Source: Macrostomum hystrix
Taxonomy: Eukaryota > Animalia > Platyhelminthes
Length of the DNA: 64,000 bases
Direction of reading: 5' to 3'
NCBI GenBank assembly: GCA_950097015.1
Contig: CATNEN010000004.1
Coordinates: 124,001-188,000 of the forward strand
Position numbers and translations under genes: made by a program. The notes beneath the pieces were generated by a model. The model was not told the DNA's origin and searched no databases. It was given only the letters and a program-made list of their open reading frames with translations. Of this stretch, positions 50,069 through 64,000 are shown one piece after another; the stretch's first letter is position 1; the number at the start of each line of letters is the position of its first letter.

Positions 50069-53000
50069 TCAGGCTAGCTCCTCCATTAGAAAGTCGAATT
50101 GTGGTTGCAGTTGCGATGAAGTTGATACAAACTGCCGCTGTTGCTGATGCTGAAGCGGTGGCTCATTGCTGCTGCTGTTGCTGTTAGCTGCGGTCGGCTG
50201 CTGCTCGACTGCCTCCTGAATATCTGGCAGGACCAGATCGCCGATGAACCAGCTGGCGGAGGACGGACCGCTCTGCTGACGAAACAGCTGCTGCTGCTGC
50301 TGCTGCTGTTGATGATGAAACAAAGAAGCCGGTGAGTCGGGTACGACGGACGGCCCAACGCTGAGCTGCTGACCGCATGACAACTGATTCAATTGCTGAG
50401 ACAAGTCATGCACCATTGGCTGCTGTAGCTGAGGAGGCAGTGACGGCGGCGGCGGCGGCGCTGGCTGCGGCGGCGCTAGCCGCGACTGTGACTCCTCGCA
50501 GGCCTGCTGCAGCAGAGCATCAGTCAGCGATTCCAGCAGCAGGTCCTCGGTGGTGCGCGAGTCGTCTAATAGCTGCTCCGGCGGCACCAGATCCCGGATG
50601 ATTTCAGTGACGCTGAGGGTGCGCGGCATGCAGCCGCCAGACCGGGCCTGCTGCAGCGGAGTGGCCGGCGCAGACGCCGGCGTCACAGACGATGGCCTCG
50701 GCGGCGACGCTTCGCTGAAGGCGGCCGCAGCTGCGGCAGCTCTGGCGCGCTGCTTGGCCAGCACAGCCTGGCGTTTTTGCGCCAGCTCGCCGCTGCGCAT
50801 GTCGGCCGTGGCCGCACGCCGGCGGTAGCTGGCCCGGTCCCGCACCTCGTAGTTGATGGTCCAGTAGGACGACTTGCCAGATTGGTCGTTTTGAACGCGC
50901 ACAAATTTATTGTGCAGCGACAGATTGTGCCGGACCGAGTTCTGCGGGTGTTCGGGTTGCATACAAAACTTAAAACTTCTCAACTAGGAATGAGGTGGCA
51001 TGGAGAGGCGATGAGAGATCAGCGAGTGGGTCAGCGGCTAGCGTCGCTGCCTCGCACTCCAATGGACGCTAGTTCGATTCTCCCTTCAAGTCACGATTAA
51101 TTTCGGGACTTGTTAGTGGGTTTGGACAGTAGCGACCGGCGGAGGTGCACCATATTTCGTGCAATCAAAGCTTGAAATAATAGCTTCGCTCCTACCTTCT
51201 GTGTGCCTGTTCTGCGTTGTGTGAGTTGTGTGCGTTGGCGCTGGGGCGTGAGGCCTTGGGGGGTGGCTGGGGGGCGTGTGTACACCGCCGCGCGCTTTCT
51301 GGATTTCCGTCAGCGCGATTGGATAAGTGTAAGTGGATAAGTACCCGGCCCCCCCTGAGGACTGATTTCTTATCAGCCTTCCGGCTTGGTCTGCTCTGTG
51401 CGTGTGGGGCTGGGGTGGGGGACACTGCTGCCTATTCTGGGTGCCTCCTGCCCTCCCCGGCTGGTCTGTGCTGCTGTGTGTGGTGCCTGTTCAGGGGAGG
51501 CGGCGCGATGGGCGCTAAGCGCCTAGTTCGCCCCCCTGCAAGTAGATAGATAGAGGCGATGAGATAAGCGAGCGAAACTCCCGGATCCTAAGAACCAATG
51601 GGATAGGCTAAACTTCCGCTCCTTAAAATGTAATCATAGTCCCTTGTTTTGTATTTCGCCATTGCTTCGTCCCGTCTGAAGTGGGCTGTGCCCTCCAGAC
51701 CCTCTGGCCCAACCCCAATCCGGTTCTCTGGCCGGGCTTGCTCTCGGTTAATACGGAGTTCTCTGATTGGTTGAAGCTTCTCTCTCGCCCCACCCAATCA
51801 GTATTAGCCCTGATCACAACCCCCGCCCCAATCCTGTGCGGCTGACGCAAACCGGTTTTGCGTGGCCGGGTCGGCGCGTGATTGGTCAGCCCCGCCTATG
51901 CCTTGGTCTACCGCCACCTCTGAAATCAGCAAAGATCACAGCCTCCTTATTAATAGGGCGAAAACGTCCGAATTGTTACAAAAAAATATATTTCCAGTTC
52001 GCTTGAGCTCGAATCTAGGGATGGATACTACAGATGCTGCTTCAAAAGAAGATTTCGAATCTCTGAAGGCTTGACTAAAATAATTATCACAATCAATTCT
52101 GCGGCCTAGACCAGCTGCTCGGCACTGCAAGCTGGCTGGTTTTGGACAGACAGAAGGACAAGGCGGAGGCAGAGGCTGTAGGGAACAGAATTCGCTACAA
52201 TCGAACAAAATTGCTACAGAACGCGCAGCCGCTCCAGGGCGGCATAGATGCTGATGTGTATATTCCCAGGCTAAAATCTAAACTGCAAAAGCTGGGAAAA
52301 ATCTAGCGAAATAGGCTGCATCTAGCGCAGAGTGAACAGCTGATGCGGAGAATCGGTGACTTCAATTTGTAGACCGAAATTGTAACGGGTCATTTTGCAC
52401 TAGACCCTCAGCAGATGAGTGAGCAGATGATCTCATGACTGAGGACAAAGGGGTTAGCAGATGATCTCATGACTGGGGAGCAAACGGGTCAGCAGATGAT
52501 CTCATGACTGGGACAAAGGGGTCAGCAGATGATCTCATGACTGAGTCAAAGGGGTGAGCAGATGATCTCATGACTGAGTCAAAGGGGTCAGCAGATGATC
52601 TCATGACTGAGTCAAAGGGGTCAGCAGATGATCTCATGACTGGGACAAAGGGGTCAGCAGATGATCTCATGACTGGGACAAAGGGATCAACAGATGATCT
52701 CATGACTGGGACAAAGGGGTCAGCAGATGATCTCATGACTGGGACAAAGGGGTCAGCAGATGATCTCATGACTGGGTCAAAGGGGTCAGTAGATGATCTC
52801 ATGGCTGGGGACAAAGGGGTCAGGAGACGATCTTATGACTGGGACAAAGGGGTCAGCAGATGATCTCATGACTGGGGGGCAATGGGGTCAGCAGATGATC
52901 TCATGACTGGGTCAAAGGGGTCAGCAGACATTCTCATGACTGGGTCAAAGGGGTCAGCAGATAATCTCATGACTGGGGACAAAGGGGTCAGCAGATGATC

Positions 53001-56000
53001 TCATGACTGGGTCAAAGGGGTCAGCAGATAATCTCATGACTGGGGACAAAGGGGTCAGCAGATGATCTCATGACTGGGACAAAGGGGTCAGCAGATGATC
53101 TCATGACTGAGTCAAAGGGGTGAGCAGATGATCTCATGACTGAGTCAAAGGGGTCAGCAGATGATCTCATGACTGAGTCAAAGGGGTCAGCAGATGATCT
53201 CATGACTGGGACAAAGGGGTCAGCAGATGATCTCATGACTGGGACAAAGGGATCAACAGATGATCTCATGACTGGGACAAAGGGGTCAGCAGATGATCTC
53301 ATGACTGGGACAAAGGGGTCAGCAGATGATCTCATGACTGGGTCAAAGGGGTCAGTAGATGATCTCATGGCTGGGGACAAAGGGGTCAGGAGACGATCTT
53401 ATGACTGGGACAAAGGGGTCAGCAGATGATCTCATGACTGGGGGGCAATGGGGTCAGCAGATGATCTCATGACTGGGTCAAAGGGGTCAGCAGACATTCT
53501 CATGACTGGGTCAAAGGGGTCAGCAGACATTCTCATGACTGGGTCAAAGGGGTCAGCAGATAATCTCATGACTGGGGACAAAGGGGTCAGCAGATGATCT
53601 CATGACTGGGTCAAAGGGGTCAGCAGATAATCTCATGACTGGGGACAAAGGGGTCAGCAGATGATCTCATGACTGGGTCAAAGGGGTCAGCAGATAATCT
53701 CATGACTGGGGACAAAGGGGTCAGCAGATAATCTCATGACTGGGTCAAAGGGGTCAGCTGTTAGGGTCAGTGAAAGAACTAAAATGAAGAACAAATATTG
53801 CCTGAAGCTGCATACGCTTTAGCAATGTAAAATTTCTTTTCTGAATACTCAATTTAAATTTCCAAGAATCAGAACTCGTGAAACTGGAAAATTTCTAATC
53901 TAGGAATCTAAATTTCTATGAACCGAATAGGAAATTTCAAAGAATCTATACTTTCTAGGAAACGATAGGTTTTAGCCTAGTGGTTAGGGCGTCGGACTCA
54001 CGACTTGAAGGTCGGGGGTTCGATTCCCGTCTCCACTGGAACAATTTGTGTGCTTTAGCAAGACACTTATAACTCTGCATTGCTTCAGTTCACCCAGCTG
54101 TTAAATGGGTACCAGCATTAGCTGGGATAATTGAAGGTGGGTGTGGCGTCCCCCCAGTCCATGGACTGAACAGCTGTACGCAGCCTTCAGATGTGCCGCG
54201 CAATAGCTACGGCTGTGCTGTCGGCTGCACATCTGACCGAATTCAGGCAGGTGTAATCAATAATTAATTATTCTTATTATTAGGAAACGAAAAAATGAAG
54301 CGAGTTTCTATGAATCCACATTTCCAGGAAGTTAGCTAGAAGCTTCTAAGAATCTAAATATGTCGAAGCTTCAACCAAGTTTACTAGACATTTCAAGCGA
54401 ATTTGCATTTTAAAGGAATCTACATTTCCAAAAAGCGAATTATAATTTCATACTAGAAACGAAAAATAGCTTTCTAATAAGTGAATAAAAATTGAAAATC
54501 TATTTTTTGGAAGTGAATCTAGAATCTTTTTTTCAAAGGATTCTAGAGCAGCAGTCTTGGAAACTCAGAAAAAAACATCACAAACTAAATAAAAAGCCGT
54601 TAGGTCGTAGATTCTGGGATTGGATTCTTATTGTTAGGGATTAGGATTCTTACAGTTTGCGATTGGGATTGGGATTCTTACAGTTTGGGATTGGGATTCT
54701 TACAGCTTGGGATTGGGATTGGGATTCTTATTGTTAGGGATTAGGATTCTTACAGTTAGGGATTAGGATTCCTACAGTTTGGGATTGGGATTCTTACAGC
54801 TTGGGATTGGGATTGGGATTCTTACAGTTAGGGATTAGGATTCTTACAGTTTGCGATTGGGATTGGGATTCTTACAGTTTGGGATTGGGATTCTTACAGT
54901 TTGCGATTGGGATTGGGATTCTTACAGTTTGGGATTGGGATTCTTACAGCTTGGGATTGGGATTGGGATTCTTACAGTTAGGGATTAGGATTCTTACAGT
55001 TTGCGATTGGGATTCTTACAGCTTGGGATTGGGATTCTTACAGCTTGGGATTAGGATTATTACAGCTTGGGATTGGGATTATTACAGTTAGGGATTGGGA
55101 TTCTTACAGTTTGGGATTGGGATTCTTACAGTTTGGGATTGGGATTATTACAGTTAGGGAATGGGATTATTACATTTAGGGATTGAGATTCTTACAGTTT
55201 GGGATTGGGATTCTTACAGTTAGGGAATGGGATTATTACAGTTAGGGATTGAGATTCTTACAGTTTGGGATTAGGATTCTTACAGTTTGGGAATGGGATT
55301 ATTACAGCTTAGGATTGGGATTATTACAGTTTGGGATTGGGATTATTAAAGTTTGGGATTGGGATTCTTAGAGCTTGGTGTGACTTTTACAGTATTGGGA
55401 CTTTTACAGTTTGGGATTGGGATTTTTGCAGTTTGAGATTTGGATTTTTACAGTTGGGATTTGGATTCTTACAGCTTGGTATTGGGATTCCTACAGTTTG
55501 GTATTGGGATTCCTACAGTTTGGGATTGAGATTCTTACAGTTTGGGATTGAGATTCCTACAGTTTGGGATTGAGATTCTTACAGTTTGGGATTGAGATTC
55601 CTACAGTTTGGGATTGAGATTCTTACAGTTTGGGATTGAGATTCTTACAGTTTGGGATTGAGATTCCTTAAGCTTAGGGCTTGAATTAATACACTTTGGG
55701 ATTGGCATTCTAACAGTTAGGGATTAGGATTCCCACAGTAAAGGATTGGGATTCAGAGAATTTTGTGATTGGGATTCCTTCAGCTTGATATTTGGATTGT
55801 TACAAACTGGGTCATTTATTCTTTATGTGTAGGGCTTGGATTCTAGCAATGTAATTGGGATTATTATTGTCGCAACCCATCTACTGATGTTAAGATGGAC
55901 ACTGGGATTACTGGGATTAGCATTTGGTATCCCAGCATTATCGATTCCCAACTAACCTTCCAACCGGCCGAGCTGGTCGGGTCGCTTTTTATGTTGAAGT

Positions 56001-56499
56001 AGGGCACGTGCCGCACCATCCAATCGTAGATCTCGGCCAAGGTCAGCCGGCCGTGCGGGCTGGCCTGAATAGCCTGGGTGATGAGCTCCGCGTAGCTCTG
56101 GTTGCCCCAGGCATTGCGGCGCTTCTGCGCTGCGACCGCAGCAGCCGAGGCGCTGGCTTGATGATGACTGAAGCGGGGAGAGTTCAACGGCCCGACAGCG
56201 GCCCGCCCCAACTGATTATGATTGGCACCGGCTGCCAGCGAGTCTTCGAAGCCCGAAGCTGCGTCGGTGTTGGTAGACGACGAGGAAGGACTCGCGGCTG
56301 TTGTTGCCGCCGCCGCCGCCGCCGCTGCAGCCTGACCCCGCTTAAACGACGGATCCCAAGTGGAGGCGCGGCTGCGAAAGCTGGCCTCATCCGCAGCGTC
56401 CTCAGGCGGCTGATGAGGATAGAAGGCGGCGCCGCTGGCATCCGCCGTCAGGAACGAGCTGGACAGAAACTCGTCCATGTCCACCTCGTCTAATTCCAT
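50069..56499 (-). CDS. FOXO: Forkhead box O transcription factor, 2 exons, 471 aa
   Basis: Exon 1 56499-55957, exon 2 50941-50069; phase-0 intron at AGWK|[10 protein letters not shown]. Forkhead domain [54 protein letters not shown]; Akt-type motifs RSRASTW and RRRAAT. Confidence 0.95.
51590..51960. promoter_or_regulatory. Promoter-like CCAAT/GC-box cluster inside the FoxO intron
   Basis: CCAAT or ATTGG near 51595, 51716, 51766, 51794, 51828, 51881; GC boxes CCCGCCCC (51822) and CCCCGCC (51890); AACCGGTT at 51850. Confidence 0.4.
52425..53760. repeat. Minisatellite, 33-bp unit, about 40 copies, with a 566-bp higher-order duplication; FoxO intron
   Basis: Unit GATGATCTCATGACTGGGACAAAGGGGTCAGCA; identical variant strings offset by 566 bp (52570 vs 53136). 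Confidence 0.96.
53968..54280 (+). mobile_element. tRNA-derived SINE family A, near full-length, FoxO intron
   Basis: TAGCCTAGTGGTTAGGGCG (A box), GGTTCGATTCC (B box), core TAGCAAGACACTTATAACTCTGC..CACCCAGCTGTTAAATGGGTACC, tail GGCAGGTGTAATCAATAATT followed by an AT-rich end. Confidence 0.9.
54610..55920. repeat. GGGATT-rich array with ~22-28 bp units, FoxO intron next to the donor
   Basis: Unit approximately GGGATTCTTACAGTTTGGGATT, decaying toward 55920. Confidence 0.92.
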
Positions 56500-57147
56500 T
56501 TTGATTGAACTTGGCTGGATGGCGCAAGCCCGCGCGCAGAAGCGCTGAAAGTCAGGAGTTCGAATATTGCCTGGATGAGTTAATGGCTGTTGCTACAAAA
56601 TTCAAGCCAATAAATAAAGGGATGCGTATCAAAGGAAAGTCAATACGGCTTAATTTGTCATTAAAATTATGTCTAATATTTATGCATCCCGCTCTAGGCC
56701 TGCCTCAACTTGTTTTCACCTGTGCTCAACTAAAAAGCACGTGGACTTCTCCCCCTGTGCTCACGTGAGAGGCTGGACGACTATTTTTAGACTATTTCCG
56801 ACACTGCCGCCCACCGCCTCGCGCCAACTTCTCTACCCGCGCGCAACACTAGGGGGGTCATATCGAAGTCATCAAGTGCGCAGACGGGCAAGTCCCGATT
56901 TGAAATGTGAAATGCCAGACAAAAACTACTCATTTGTTGGACTTTTTACTGAAAAAAACACTCACTTTGTAACAGTGTTTTATTTTTAGAACAGGAAGCC
57001 AAAAAATGTGAAATTATGTACTTTTTTCATTAGCAATTAGCATGGAACTAGCATGTTTTGCCCCCCTTCGGGGAGCAGAAATATTTTTAATTCGTCTTGT
57101 ATATACTGTTTAGCAGCTGAATTTACAGCTTTTTAAAGCTAAAATAA

Positions 57148-58623
57148 ACCCCCAGTTGACAATGATCCCCCAGTTGACAATGATCCCCCAGTTGATGATG
57201 ATCCCCCAGTTGACAATGATCCCCCAGTTGACAATGAACCCCCAGTTGACAATGATCCCCAGTTGACAATGATCCCCCAGTTGATGATGATCCCCCAGTT
57301 GACAATGATCCCCCAGTTGACAATGAACCCCCAGTTGACAATGATCCCCAGTTGACAATGATCCCCCAGTTCACAATGATCCCCTTGTTGACAATGATCC
57401 CCCAGTTGACAATGATCCCACAGTTGACAATGATCCCCCAGTTGATGATGATCCCCCAGTTGACAATGATCCCCCAGTTGACAATGATCCCCCAGTTGAC
57501 AATGATCCCCCAGTTGACAATGATCTCACAGTTGACAATGATCCCCCAGTTTACAATGATCCCCCAGTTGACAATGATCCCCCAGTTGACAATGATCACC
57601 CAGTTGACAATGATCTCACAGTTGACAATGATCCCCCAGTTGACAATGATCCCCCAGTTGACAATGATCCCCCAGTTGACAATGATCCCCAGTTGACAAT
57701 GATCCCCCAGTTCACAATGATCCCCTTGTTGACAATGATCCCCCAGTTGACAATGATCCCACAGTTGACAATGATCCCCCAGTTGACAATGATCTCCCAG
57801 TTGACAATGATCCCCCAGTTGACAATGAACACCCATTTGACAATCATTCCCCAGTTGACAATGATCCCCCAGTTGATAATGATACCCCAGTTGACAATGA
57901 TCCCTCAGATGACAATGATCCCCCAGTTGACAATGATCACCCAGTTGATGATGATCCCCCAGTTGATAATGATACCCCAGTTGACAATGATCCCCCAGTT
58001 GACAATGATCCCCCAGTTGACAATGATCTCCCAGTTGACAATGATCCCCCAGTTGACAATGAACACCCATTTGACAATCATTCCCAAGTTGACAATGATC
58101 CCCCAGTTGATAATGATACCCCAGTTGACAATGATCCCTCAGTTGACAATGATCCCCCAGTTGACAATGATCACCCAGTTGACAATGATCCCCCAGTTGA
58201 CAATGATCCCCCAGTTGACAATGTTCCCCCAGTTGACAATGATCCCCAGTTGACAATGATCCCCCAGTTCACAATGATCCCCTTGTTGACAATGATCCCC
58301 CAGTTGACAATGATCCCACAGTTGACAATGATCCCCCAGTTTACAATGATCCCCCAGTTGATGATGATCCCCCAGTTGACAATGATCCCCCAGTTGACAA
58401 TGATCCCCCAGTTGACAATGATCCCCCAGTTGACAATGATCTCACAGTTGACAATGATCCCCCAGTTGACAATGATCCCCAGTTGACAATGATCCCCCAG
58501 TTGACAATGATCACCCAGTTGACAATGATCCCCCAGTTGACAATGATCCCCCAGTTGACAATGATCCCCCATTTGATGAGGACTCCTTATTGATGATGAT
58601 GCCCAGTTGACAATGTTGCCCAG
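57148..58623. repeat. Minisatellite, 18-bp unit, about 80 copies, inside Helitron A
   Basis: Unit CCCCCAGTTGACAATGAT. Confidence 0.97.
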
Positions 58624-58772
58624 TTAATTTTTATATTAGCTTCTTTTGTAGAAAATTGAGAAGAACAACAATGAAATGATTATTAGGCAAAATATTTATC
58701 ATACAAATTATATCATTATGACGTTATGAGATAACAAACTTAAAATTCAATTCAATGACAAAAGAAAAATTT

Positions 58773-60770
58773 TGCCATGATTCAAACGCTGGTTTAGCCA
58801 TGATTCAGACTCTGGTTTAGCCATGATTCATACTATGGTTTAGCCATGATTCAGACGCTGGTTTAGCCATGATTCAGACTCTGGTTTAGCCATGATTCAG
58901 ACTCTGGTTTAGCCATGATGCAAACTCTGGTTTAGCCATGATTCAAACTCTGGTTTAGCCATGATTCGGACTCTGGTTTAGCCATGATTCAGTCTCTGGT
59001 TTAGCCATGATTCAGACTCTGGTTTAGCCATGATTCAGACTCTGGTTTAGCCATGATTCATACTATGGTTTAGCCATGATTCAGACGCTGGTTTAGCCAT
59101 GATTCAGACTCTGGTTTAGCCATGATTCAGACTCTGGTTTAGCCATGATGCAAACTCTGGTTTAGCCATGATTCAAACTCTGGTTTAGCCATGATTCGGA
59201 CTCTGGTTTAGCCATGATTCAGTCTCTGGTTTAGCCATGATTCAGACGCTGGTTTAGCTATGATTTAAACTCTGTTTTAGCCATGATTCAGACTCTGGTT
59301 TTGCCATGATTCAGACTCTGGTTTAGCCATGATTCAGACTATGGTTTAGCCATGATTCAGACTCTGGTTTAGCCATGATTCAGACCCTGGTTTAGCCATG
59401 ATTCAAACTCTGGTTTAGCCATGATTCAGACTCTGGTTTAGCCATGATTTAAACTCTGTTTTAGCCATGATTCAGACCCTGGTTTAGCCATGATTCAAAC
59501 TCTGGTTTAGCCATGATTCAGACTCTGGTTTTGCCATGATTCAAACTCTGGTTTAGCCATGATTCAGACTCTGGTTTAGCCATGATTCAGATTCAGACTC
59601 TGGTTTAGCCATGATTCAAACTCTGGGTTAGCCATGATTCAAAATCTGGTTTAGCCATGATTCAGACCCTGGTTTAGCCATGATTCAAACTCTGGTTTAG
59701 CCATGATTCAGACTCTGGTTTAGCCATGATTTAAACTCTGTTTTAGCCATGATTCAGACCCTGGTTTAGCCATGATTCAAACTCTGGTTTAGCCATGATT
59801 CAGACTCTGGTTTTGCCATGATTCAAACTCTGGTTTAGCCATGATTCAGACTCTGGTTTAGCCATGATTCAGATTCAGACTCTGGTTTAGCCATGATTCA
59901 AACTCTGGGTTAGCCATGATTCAAAATCTGGTTTAGCCATGATTCAAACTCTGGTTTAGCCATGATTCAGACTCTGGTTTAGCCATGATTCAAACTCTGG
60001 TTTAGCCATGATTCAGACGCTGGTTTAGCCATGATTCAGACTCTGGTTTAGCCATGATTCAAAGTCTGGGTTAGCCATGATTCAAACTCTGGTTTAGCCA
60101 TGATTCAAACTCTGGTTTAGCCATGATTCAGACTCTGGTTTAGCCATGATTCAGACTCTGGTTTAGCCATGATTCAGACTCTGGTTTAGCCATGATTCAG
60201 ACTCTGGTTTAGCCATGATTCAGACTCTGGTTTAGCCATGATTCAAACTCTGGTTTAGCCATGATTCAGACGCTGGTTTAGCCATGATTCAGACTCTGGT
60301 TTAGCCATGATTCAAAGTCTGGGTTAGCCATGATTCAAACTCTGGTTTAGCCATGATTCAAACTCTGGGTTAGCCATGATTCAAACTCTGGTTTAGCCAT
60401 GATTCAGACTCTGGTTTAGCCATGATTCAGACTCTGGTTTAGCCATGATTCAAACTCTGGTTTAGCCATGATTCAGACCCTGGTTTAGCCATGATTCAAA
60501 CTCTGGTTTAGCCATGATTCAGACTCTGGTTTAGCCATGATTCAGACTCTGGTTTAGCCATGATTCAGACTCCAGTTTAGCCATGATTCAGACTCTGGTT
60601 TAGCCATGATTCAAGCTCTGGTTTAGCCATGATTCAGACGCTGGTTTAGCCATGATTCAAGCTCTATTTTTGCCATGATTCAAACTCTGGTTTAGCCATG
60701 ATTCAGACGCTGGTTTAGCCATGATTCAAGCTCTATTTTTGCCATGATTCAAACTCAGGTTTGCTATGAT
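58773..60770. repeat. Minisatellite, 23-bp unit, about 87 copies, inside Helitron A
   Basis: Unit GCCATGATTCAGACTCTGGTTTA. Confidence 0.97.
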
Positions 60771-61457
60771 TTATGATATTTTATTTACGAAATGAAAAAA
60801 AAAATCAAAATAATCTTCAATCACTACTGGCTGAAAATTAGTCTAAATGATTTGACGCAGTGCAGAATCGAACCCTAGCCTAGCCTATAACCTATTCCTA
60901 GTGCCTACACATCGGCTATTCCGACTGTTGGTTGGTGGGTGCAAAAATCAGCCTTATAAAATGAATTCTCAAAGTTCTGGCTTTGTACAATGAAGTGAGA
61001 AAATAGAGTACACTCAGTCTCGCGGTTGGTTGTGTACATTTATTTCAAATTTGTCTCCAGAGTGCAGGCTTCTAACTCAGTCAGCGAGGGGGTGTTGCGC
61101 AATTTGACGATGCAATTCCAATTCAGCGGCAGTGAGTAAAATTCTCAATAGGCCAAGATGGTTTGACCTTTAAAAAATCATGTTTTTCGAATATTTAATC
61201 CCTTTAGCAATAAAGTTAGGCTTAATAAAAATACGTGTAAAATTGTCCCCATATTTGGCATCTTTTGGTGAAGAAATGGTGAAAATCGGTTGAGCCGTTC
61301 GGAAGAAAATCAATTACAACCAACCAACCAAGCAACCAACCATTTCATTTTTAGTATAGTGGACTAGCAAGTTTTGCCCCCCTTCGGGGAGCAGAAATAC
61401 TTTTAATTCGTCTAGTATATACTTTTTAGCAGCTGAATTTACAGACTTTTATAGCAA

Positions 61458-63230
61458 CAATGATCCCCTAGTTGATGATGATCCCCTAGTTGACAATTAT
61501 CCCCCAGTTGACAATGAACCCCCAGTTGACAATGAACCCCCAGTTGACAATGATCCCCCAGTTGACAATGATCCCCCAGTTGACAATGATCCCACAGTTG
61601 ACAATGATCCCCCAGTTGACAAAGATCCCCAGTTCACAATGATCCCCCAGTTGATGATGATCCCCCAGTTGATGATGATCCCCCAGTTGAAAATGATCCC
61701 CCATGCAGTTGACAATGATCCCCCAGTTGACAATGATCCCCCAGTTGACAATGATCCCCAAGTTAACAAAGATCCCCCAGTTCACAATGATCCCCCAGTT
61801 GATGATGACTCCCCATTGATGATGATCCCCAGTTAACAATGTTCCTCCAGTTGACAATGTTCCCCCAGTTGACAATGATCCCCCAGTTGATGATGATCCC
61901 CCAGTTGACAATGATCCCCCAGTTGACAATGATCCCCCAGTTGACAATGATCCCCCAGTTGACAATGATCCCGCCCGTTGACAATGATCCCCCAGTTGAT
62001 GATGATCACCCAGTTGACAATGATCCCCCAGTTGACAATGATCCCCCAGTTGACAATGATTCCCGAGTTGACAATGATCCCGCCTGTTGACAATGATCCC
62101 CCAGTTGACAATGATCCCCCACTTGAAAATGATCCCCCAGTTGACAATGATCCCCCAGTTGACAACGATCCCCCAGTTGACAATGATCCCCCAGTTGACA
62201 ATGATCCCGCCCGTTGACAATGATCCCACAGTTGACAATGAACCCCCAGTTGACAATGAACCCCCAGTTGACAATGAACCCCCAGTTGACAATGATCCCC
62301 CAGTTGACAATGATCCCCCAGTTGACAATGATCCCCCAGTTGACAATGAACCCCCAGTTGACAATGATCCCCCAGTTGACAATGATCCCCCAGTTGACAA
62401 TGATCCCCCAGTTGACAATGAACCCCAGTTGACAACGATCCCCAAGTTGACAATGATCCCCCAGTTGACAATGATCCCGCCCGTTGACAATGATCCCACA
62501 GTTGACAATGAACCCCCAGTTGGCAATGAACCCCCAGTTGACAATGAACCCCCAGTTGACAATGATCCCCCAGTTGACAATGATCCCCCAGTTGACAATG
62601 AACCCCCAGTTGACAATGATCCCCCAGTTGACAATGATCCCCCAGTTGACAATGATCCCCCAGTTGACAATGAACCCCAGTTGACAACGATACCCCAGTT
62701 GACAATGATCCCCCAGTTGACAATGATCCCGCCCGTTGACAATGATCCCACAGTTGACAATGAACCCCCAGTTGACAATGAACCCCCAGTTGACAATGAT
62801 CCCCCAGTTGACAATGATCCCCCAGTTGACAATGATCCCCCAGTTGACAATGATCCCCCAGTTGACAATGATCCCCCAGTTGACAATGATCCCCCAGTTG
62901 ACAATGATCCCCCAGTTGACAATGATCCCACAGTTGACAATGATCCCCCAGTTGACAATGATCCCCCAGTTCACAATGATCCCCCAGTTCACAATGATCC
63001 CCCAGTTGACAATGATCCCCCAGTTGACAATTATCCCCCAGTTGACAATTATCCCCCAGTTTACCATGATCCCCCAGTTGACGATTATCCCCCAGTTGAC
63101 CATTACCCCCTCGCAGTTGACAATGATCCCCCAGTTGACAATTATCCCCCAGTTTACCATGATCCCCCAGTTGACGATTATCCCCCAGTTCACCATGATC
63201 CCCATTTTGATGATGACTCCCCAGTTGACG
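61458..63230. repeat. Minisatellite, 18-bp unit, inside Helitron B
   Basis: Unit CCCCCAGTTGACAATGAT with variants CCCGCCCGTTGAC and CCCGAGTTGAC. Confidence 0.97.
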
Positions 63231-63239
63231 TTGATTTTT

Positions 63240-64000
63240 CAAACGCTGGGTTAGCCAAGATTCAATTTCAGGTTTCGCCATGTTTTAAACCCTGGTGGGC
63301 TATGATTCAAACTCTGGTTTAGCCATGATTCAAACTCTGGTTTAGCCATGATTCAAACTCTGGTTTAGCCATGATTCAAACGCTGGGTTAGCCATTATTG
63401 AAACTCGGTTTTTGCCATGATTCAAACTCTGGTTTAGCCATGATTCAAACGCTGGGTTAGCCATGATTGAAACTCTGGTTTAGCCAAGATTCAAACTCTG
63501 GTTGGCTATGATTTCAAACTCTGGTTTAGCCATGATTCAAACTCTGGTTTAGCCATGATTCAGACGCTGGTTTAGCCATGCTGATGATGATGGTTTAGCC
63601 ATGATTCAGACTCTGGTTTAGCCATGATTCAAACTCTGGTTGGCTAGGATTTCAAACTCTGGTTTAGCCATGATTCAAACTCTGGTTTAGCCATGATTCA
63701 AACTCTGGTTTAGCCATGATTCAAGCTCTGGTTTAGCCATGATTCAAACTCTGGTTTAGCCATGATTCAAACTCTGGTTTAGCCATGATTCAAACTCTGG
63801 TTTAGCCATGATTCAAACTCTGGTTTAGCCATGATTCAAACTCTGGTTTAGCCATGATTCAGACTCTGGTTTAGCCATGATTCAAACTCTGGTTTAGCCA
63901 TGATTGAAACTCTGGTTTAGCGATGATTTAAACTCTGGTTTAGCCACGATTCAAACTCTGGTTTAGCCATGATTCAAACTCTGGTTTAGCCATGATTCAA
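63240..64000. repeat. Minisatellite, 23-bp unit, inside Helitron B, runs off the window
   Basis: Unit GCCATGATTCAAACTCTGGTTTA. Confidence 0.97.

Follow-up and report, generated by a model that had tools for sequence, protein, structure and literature searches.

We analysed a 64,000-nt stretch of the Macrostomum hystrix genome (contig CATNEN010000004.1, positions 124,001 to 188,000 of the forward strand; hereafter the window), in which two Helitron elements, copy A and copy B, lie head to tail upstream of a FoxO gene, with a fragment of another Helitron, X, adjoining copy B. Coordinates are those of the whole window; L-numbers denote fetched loci, C-numbers denote contigs, and L061 is the next 10 kb beyond the window. 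Tandem arrays were delimited with Tandem Repeats Finder, and ends and joints were taken straight from the sequence. On the minus strand the order is copy B, copy A and then a host T at 57047. Copy B ends in CTAG at 61364 and copy A starts with TC at 61363/61362, which gives a CTAG/TC joint without spacer (61364/61363; feature limits 61361..61367, minus strand), of a type seen 115 times in the genome. An initial annotation, made from the letters alone, had described an adjacent head-to-tail pair with a CTAG/TC joint, closed by the same hairpin and CTAG in both copies and carrying its arrays in the same order; the sequence and the Tandem Repeats Finder results bear out all of these points. Tandem repeats make up 85% of the region of the pair.

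Copy A (57048..61363, minus strand) is complete, a non-autonomous Helitron 4,316 bp long, with its 5'-TC at 61363 and its CTAG-3' at 57051-57048, followed by T, and both its length and its end agree with those annotated initially. Its head (60772..61363, minus strand) comprises about 590 bp of unique sequence, as judged from the sequence and from similarity search, with a (TTGG/TTGC)n microsatellite at 61316-61340. Then follow a 23-bp array of 86.6 units (58770..60771, minus strand), an AT-rich spacer (58577..58769, minus strand), an 18-bp array of 79.6 units (57149..58576, minus strand) and a 101-bp tail (57048..57148, minus strand), in which a hairpin (57076-57060; 7-bp stem, GAA loop) is separated by 8 nt from the terminal CTAG. 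Sequence comparison showed that the spacer is absent from B and serves as a subfamily marker. It had been correctly described as confined to A within the pair, but its length is 193–205 bp and not about 150 bp.

Only the 3' two thirds of copy B lie inside the window (61364..64000, minus strand). Its 3' end is as the initial annotation described it, but the element is incomplete in the window: its 5'-TC was located at L061:1370 (window-equivalent 65370), 1,370 bp past the window end, and the whole element measures 4,007 bp. The 93-bp tail of B (61364..61456, minus strand) contains the hairpin (61392-61376), 8 nt and the CTAG (61367-61364), and it is preceded by an 18-bp array of 98.1 units (61457..63229, minus strand) and by a 23-bp array (63238..64000, minus strand) that continues outside the window to L061:775. 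Just before the 3' end, B has the commoner T variant and A has the A variant. The 7-bp stem of the terminator hairpin includes one G-T wobble, and its folding energy as DNA was -6.6 kcal/mol (z = -2.35). Neither repeat was accepted as coding: several open frames run through the 18-bp repeat, but they are a product of the repeat itself, and a frame cannot be kept through the 23-bp repeat. When the window was searched for more Helitron ends of the A/B type, just the two known tails and one head came up, and no other array of the window can be assigned to such Helitrons. No A/B-family sequence was found in the 8.6 kb upstream of copy B either, and thus the chain formed by this family is a dimer and no longer.

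Directly upstream of B lies X, a head fragment of about 1.2 kb from another RepHel-coding Helitron, delimited by sequence matches (L061:1371-2535, window-equivalent 65371-66535, minus strand); the initial annotation had not noted it. The 730 bp next to B were about 100% identical to seven other sites. At 4 out of these 7 sites a Rep domain lies 3.0–3.5 kb further on in matching orientation, so that X corresponds to the head part of a transposase-coding Helitron. A tetranucleotide run and the likely TC start of X, preceded by A, were found near L061:2535, and the head of B interrupts X within the first open frame of X, some 150 bp from the start of that frame. At the other end of the chain, similarity search identified the 548 bp between the 3' end of A and the FoxO ATG (56500..57047, no strand assigned) as single-copy DNA. 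Because this DNA leads directly into FoxO, the 3' part of X is missing, and therefore the X head and B must have arrived as one composite. An assembly search with the FoxO-side flank returned just the locus itself, with neither another allele nor an empty site. The X/B joint was also present at C31:1961119, where the next unit is B-like (97%) and not A-like; the three-part chain X-B-A was thus not seen twice.

The chain sits between an SNF8/EAP30-like gene and FoxO. The FoxO gene is on the minus strand and was recognised by profile and similarity search in two exons, given here by their open-frame limits: exon 1 (55864..56499), which opens with the ATG at 56499 and encodes the first half of the Forkhead domain, and exon 2 (50069..50983), which encodes the second half together with the C-terminal part. 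The best solved relatives of the Forkhead domain were FOXO4/3/1 (E 1e-23 to 1e-17), with other named Fox classes at 6.5e-6 or weaker, and at the level of the predicted protein the identity of the gene as FoxO was confirmed. The last base of copy A lies 549 bp upstream of the ATG, matching the distance of about 550 bp given in the initial annotation, and the elements and the gene share the same strand; this same-orientation position could matter for FoxO regulation. FoxO intron 1 contains a 33-bp array of 40 units and a 22-bp array of 53 units (52422-53758 and 54615-55804), and the window search detected no Helitron end of the A/B type beside them. Past the chain, the next host gene is SNF8-like: its open frame of 247 aa contains a full EAP30/Vps36 domain (E 6e-51; L061:7390-8133, plus strand). 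After it a 16-bp array of 69 units was found (L061:8897-10000). About twenty more arrays, with units of 18–51 bp and lengths of 0.2–2.2 kb each, occur in window positions 1-50000.

The exact 23-nt head pattern was found 234 times in the genome and the exact 28-nt tail pattern 392 times, against 0 for the reversed control patterns, and thus the occurrence of these ends is far beyond chance. In the 220-Mb assembly, the first 200 bp of copy A gave over 1,000 candidate places and its last 100 bp nearly 600; the scored matches to the ends of A were 93–100% identical. In particular, the 3' 100 bp of A were identical in 21 other copies (22 places including A), and its 5' 200 bp were 98% identical to copies on other contigs. 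The family is young, with hundreds of copies: its youth follows from the 98–100% identity among copies, which also supports mobility indirectly.

To describe the ends we used a sample of 60 fetched loci with 39 heads and 39 tails (78 ends), and all 78 were sharp: 39 out of 39 heads begin with TC and 39 out of 39 tails end with CTAG. An A precedes 14 of the 17 solo heads, i.e. those not joined to another Helitron, and a T follows 37 of the 39 tails. Genome-wide, the base before the exact head is A in 55 out of 234 cases, and CTAG precedes 115. At the locus itself, copy A is followed by T, and copy B is preceded by a C that belongs to fragment X and not to host DNA. We saw no duplicated target flank. 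When the head (600 bp) was compared with the tail (110 bp), inverted matches were at most 9 nt long, a length that 60 out of 200 shuffles equalled or exceeded. Copies thus stop at TC and CTAG between A and T across the family, with the hairpin before the CTAG and with neither inverted repeats nor target duplication, and A and B are confirmed as canonical non-autonomous Helitrons of the Helitron1 type, in line with the initial call. Membership in the Helentron, HINE or DINE-1 groups was considered and rejected on the basis of the A and T flanks, the TC and CTAG ends and the lack of subterminal inverted repeats.

Members of the family have a head of about 600 bp, followed by the 23-bp array, then the 18-bp array and finally a tail of 95 bp that contains the terminator hairpin. 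The 23-bp array was present in all 30 sampled head loci and starts 613–658 bp from the 5' end in 29 out of 31 heads; the two exceptional starts belong to the rearranged locus L003. Likewise, the 18-bp array was present in all 30 sampled tails, and the distance from its end to the 3' terminus was 95 bp in 29 of them and 113 bp in one. Head-tail spacing on contig C1 ranged from 1.8 to 6.6 kb, so array length varies among copies. The family carries and disperses both arrays, as had been suggested for it from the two copies at the FoxO locus.

We then compared A and B with each other and with the rest of the family. Over the 590 bp of the head, 23 positions and a further 10 gap columns set them apart (about 4%), and over the tail 12 out of 112 positions do so (about 11%). 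The dominant variant of the 23-mer contains GTCTG in A and GTTTG in B, and the spacer of A is shared at 97–100% with copies on C14, C39 and C38. A maximum-likelihood tree built from 42 heads grouped A with copies on C14, C35, C29 and C7 in a nested clade (98/97 support, followed by 99/86), with a terminal branch of 0.002 for A, and placed B outside this clade. The loci of the tree had been selected by similarity to A, and a separate search was therefore run with the head of B: its nearest relative (98%) was on C31, and A was absent from the best 40 matches. By these sequence comparisons, A and B are members of different subfamilies and not sisters. Since each has closer relatives elsewhere, a single rolling-circle round or a local duplication was considered excluded for the pair. 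The initial annotation had read the pair as a concatemer, and this part of it did not hold given the tree, the head and tail differences, the spacer and the mix of repeat variants.

Further CTAG/TC junctions, for which the initial annotation had proposed a search, were abundant, with CTAG directly before 115 of the 234 exact heads. Among the 100 positions listed, these joints represent at least 60 separate places. Joints of opposite polarity were not found anywhere in the genome, with 0 head-to-head joints and 0 tail-to-tail joints (0–6 nt between tails). By our own estimate, the genome contains a few thousand Helitron ends in 2.2e8 bases, and a random insertion would meet an end about once in 1e5 events; the joints must therefore be strongly directed. 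Exactly equal or alternating periods were recognised from the listing of joint coordinates on C30 (C30:4729435-4738843; 3,136 bp three times), C9 (C9:332137-352413; 5,020 bp), C14 (C14:695493-720859; alternating 3,689 and 5,021 bp) and C1 (C1:25816474-25844657; a 14,753-bp repeat), and these periods show that entire chains have been multiplied again, by later duplication, as higher-order units.

In 11 of the 21 sampled joints the tail comes from the A/B family itself, and in the other 10 from a separate family of mini-Helitrons. The mini-Helitron is 330–370 bp long and has a related 5' end and a different hairpin with CTAG; its head-to-tail chains resemble a 340-bp satellite. Such chains often adjoin satellite-carrying heads (L018:1-1500; also L003, L004, L007, L008, L026, L029, L036, L041 and L046), and some joints are slightly scarred on the 5' side, with an extra TCT or a partial duplication of the head.

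The initial annotation had also proposed a search for an autonomous RepHel partner with the same ends, and a relative of this type was found by matching the coordinates of Rep matches with those of exact heads. Nine Rep matches of a second group lie on the same strand 2.8–7.3 kb downstream of exact heads. One of these loci, L076, shares 798 bp with the head of A at 91.6% identity, including 5–8 units of the 23-mer. At its tail end it has 36 nt in common with the family, and its own 3' end, near L076:7762, corresponds to 67 nt of the tail of A at 87%. The open frames of L076 and L077 matched Helitron_like_N (E 8e-45) and PIF1 (E 1e-32), and, judging from these predicted exons, the partner most likely supplies, or once supplied, the transposase. 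The 18-bp motif was not found in the partner element. Since the partner holds a short run of the 23-mer without the 18-bp motif, the 23-bp array probably grew from sequence already within it.

Within the first open frame of the partner lies a 69-bp coding repeat (L076:1488-1929; 6.4 units), which gave a weak STPR match (E 0.003, under the Pfam cut-off). Its own terminator is damaged, with CTG-A in place of CTAG (L076:7600-7765 and L077:4160-4344), and an intact tail duplicate was located 6.6 kb beyond it, past a 31-bp and a 22/44-bp array; from its sequence, this arrangement looks like a terminator bypass capturing downstream DNA. The strongest Rep matches (L063-L074) and a tandem autonomous pair (L075) were also tried as partner and rejected, as their heads and tails are unlike those of the A/B family and belong to other Helitron families. 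The pair at L075 (C38:19326001-19336000, minus strand), unrelated to A and B, has an exact CTAG/TC joint, a 6,424-bp period and an open frame of 1,840 aa; an A stands before its head, and the 5' end is followed by a tetranucleotide run, (TCTG)n.

The polarity and frequency of the joints lead us to favour two routes: new copies landing where resident ones end, or composites moving as units. For the FoxO locus we consider it probable that a one-way chain of three Helitron pieces was formed, in which the B/A joint arose when a single element, or else a composite spanning the X head to the B tail, integrated precisely where a resident copy ends. The transposase would have been attracted by a Helitron end, which it is already able to recognise and nick, and any head together with any downstream tail in the chain could later move as a composite. 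In the most economical version, a composite of X head and B would have landed on the A/T that a host A forms with the T opening copy A, the resident element, since this version involves no departure from the A/T rule. The near-identity of fragment X to other X copies fits a recent arrival.

Several observations weigh against this interpretation. The alternative order, in which A would have landed between the last G of B and the host T, implies a non-canonical G/T target and may also apply: the distance to the nearest relative is 2% for B and less than 0.5% for A, which favours a later arrival of A, although the greater distance of B may reflect just a rare lineage. The base adjoining the 5' end of B is the C of X and not A. 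The independent joint events are fewer than 115, given the many duplicated copies and the equal spacings on C9, C14, C30 and C1. In addition, the chain neighbours at L054-L057 are near-identical, which indicates that some chains of this genome do arise through concatemers or unequal exchange. Finally, the coding region of the partner is split into eight frames, which were searched piecewise.

Four other origins of the chain were weighed against integration at a resident end. The whole chain of X head, B and A could have been assembled elsewhere and moved to the FoxO site as one composite, which would start at the 5' end of X, run through the terminator of B and stop at that of A. We regard this as unlikely, yet it is the alternative to be taken most seriously: the absence of the 3' part of X next to the unique FoxO-side flank means that at least the X head and B came together, the X/B joint occurs again on C31, terminator bypass is established for Helitrons (PMC4778049), and one partner copy with a damaged terminator runs on to the next terminator. 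However, the unit that follows the B-like copy on C31 is itself B-like (97%), the three-part chain was seen once, and the origin of the B/A joint would merely be shifted to another place. That B and A represent one rolling-circle concatemer, produced when the transposase overran the terminator of a template that was circular or tandem, and inserted as a dimer in one event, seems to us very improbable. A base-exact CTAG/TC is what is described for Helraiser circles (PMC5876387), concatemers are the usual explanation of published Helitron arrays (PMC9248874), and some chains in this genome do have near-identical neighbours or equal periods, such as the 3,136 bp repeated three times on C30. However, the units of a dimer copied from one template would begin identical. 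The heads of A and B diverge by about 4% and their tails by 11%, a 200-bp spacer and the repeat composition distinguish them as well, and each has closer relatives on other contigs.

Slightly less credible still is a local tandem duplication, or an unequal crossing-over between the internal arrays, followed by divergence. Long arrays are prone to unequal exchange, and higher-order duplications exist in the 23-bp array of A and in chains elsewhere, but an exchange within arrays cannot yield an exact tail-to-head joint, and the divergence between A and B exceeds that of A from copies on other contigs. Least credible of all is an assembly artefact caused by misjoined repeat-rich reads. The 85% share of tandem repeat and the small size of contig C4 (339 kb) would make such an error conceivable, but the exact type of joint occurs at 60 or more places on many contigs with a single polarity, and both units are distinct and internally consistent in sequence.

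A broader form of the preferred interpretation, integration at a resident end, may be put forward tentatively: the Helitron transposases of this genome would preferentially integrate at resident Helitron termini, those of other families included ('end homing'), building strictly one-way chains in which every head-tail pair could become mobile again as a composite. We hold this general form to be possible and somewhat less likely than its opposite. It fits the data because half of the heads are in exact joints, all of these joints share one polarity, and adjacent copies are not necessarily sisters. To our knowledge, end homing is absent from the accepted Helitron model, which explains arrays as concatemers.

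The pair itself is real but ordinary: the genome has more than 100 such joints, and satellite cargo and tandem joining are both known in other species. The locus is nevertheless a clean and fully resolved case that combines satellite-carrying Helitrons with exact tail-to-head joining. The value of the family lies in its hundreds of young copies, a coding partner with common ends, and polar joints at half of the heads, often with unrelated neighbours. This makes the genome suited to testing concatemer formation against landing on resident ends as the origin of Helitron arrays, as well as to studying the conversion of transposon cargo into satellite DNA; whether new copies home to resident ends is a question worth following genome-wide.

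Regarding the satellite cargo, rolling-circle elements with internal satellite arrays have been reviewed (PMC10048060). The oyster Helentrons Cg_HINE and Cg170 resemble the A/B family in having a left module that ends in a microsatellite, one or more internal arrays and a right module with the terminator, and these elements, some with two arrays, disperse short arrays through gene-rich DNA (PMC7492417). They differ in their T-rich or TT targets and subterminal inverted repeats, whereas the A/B family has A/T targets and no inverted repeats. In Drosophila, DINE-1 and DINE-TR1 are non-autonomous rolling-circle elements of very high abundance, whose internal tandem repeats can seed satellites. 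DINE-1, named for comparison in the initial annotation, is a Helentron (cited in PMC7492417) with other termini and another target, and its likeness to A and B is functional, an analogy and not a membership.

Regarding the joints, we found no paper on Helitron chains in Macrostomum. Head-to-tail Helitron joints or tandem arrays are known from bats, plants, flies and fungi, where they are usually credited to rolling-circle replication (PMC5876387; PMC9248874; PMC5148889). Helibat of Myotis lucifugus, Helitron-1_DPe of the Drosophila pseudoobscura Y and the centromeric Helitrons of maize and rice share with A and B the 5'-TC, the hairpin with CTAG-3', the A/T target and the lack of target duplication, and also the exact tail-to-head joints and tandem arrays (same sources). 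In fungi, FoHeli4 and a triple in Metarhizium acridum have Helitron copies inserted at the 5' end of another copy, and for the tandem triple a Fusarium paper weighs insertion into a resident 5' end against rolling-circle replication of a circle (PMC5148889). The fungal joints are single cases, in contrast to the more than 100 joints of one family here; and most published arrays have been interpreted as concatemers of a single element, whereas in M. hystrix half of the heads are in joints, many of them across subfamilies or families.

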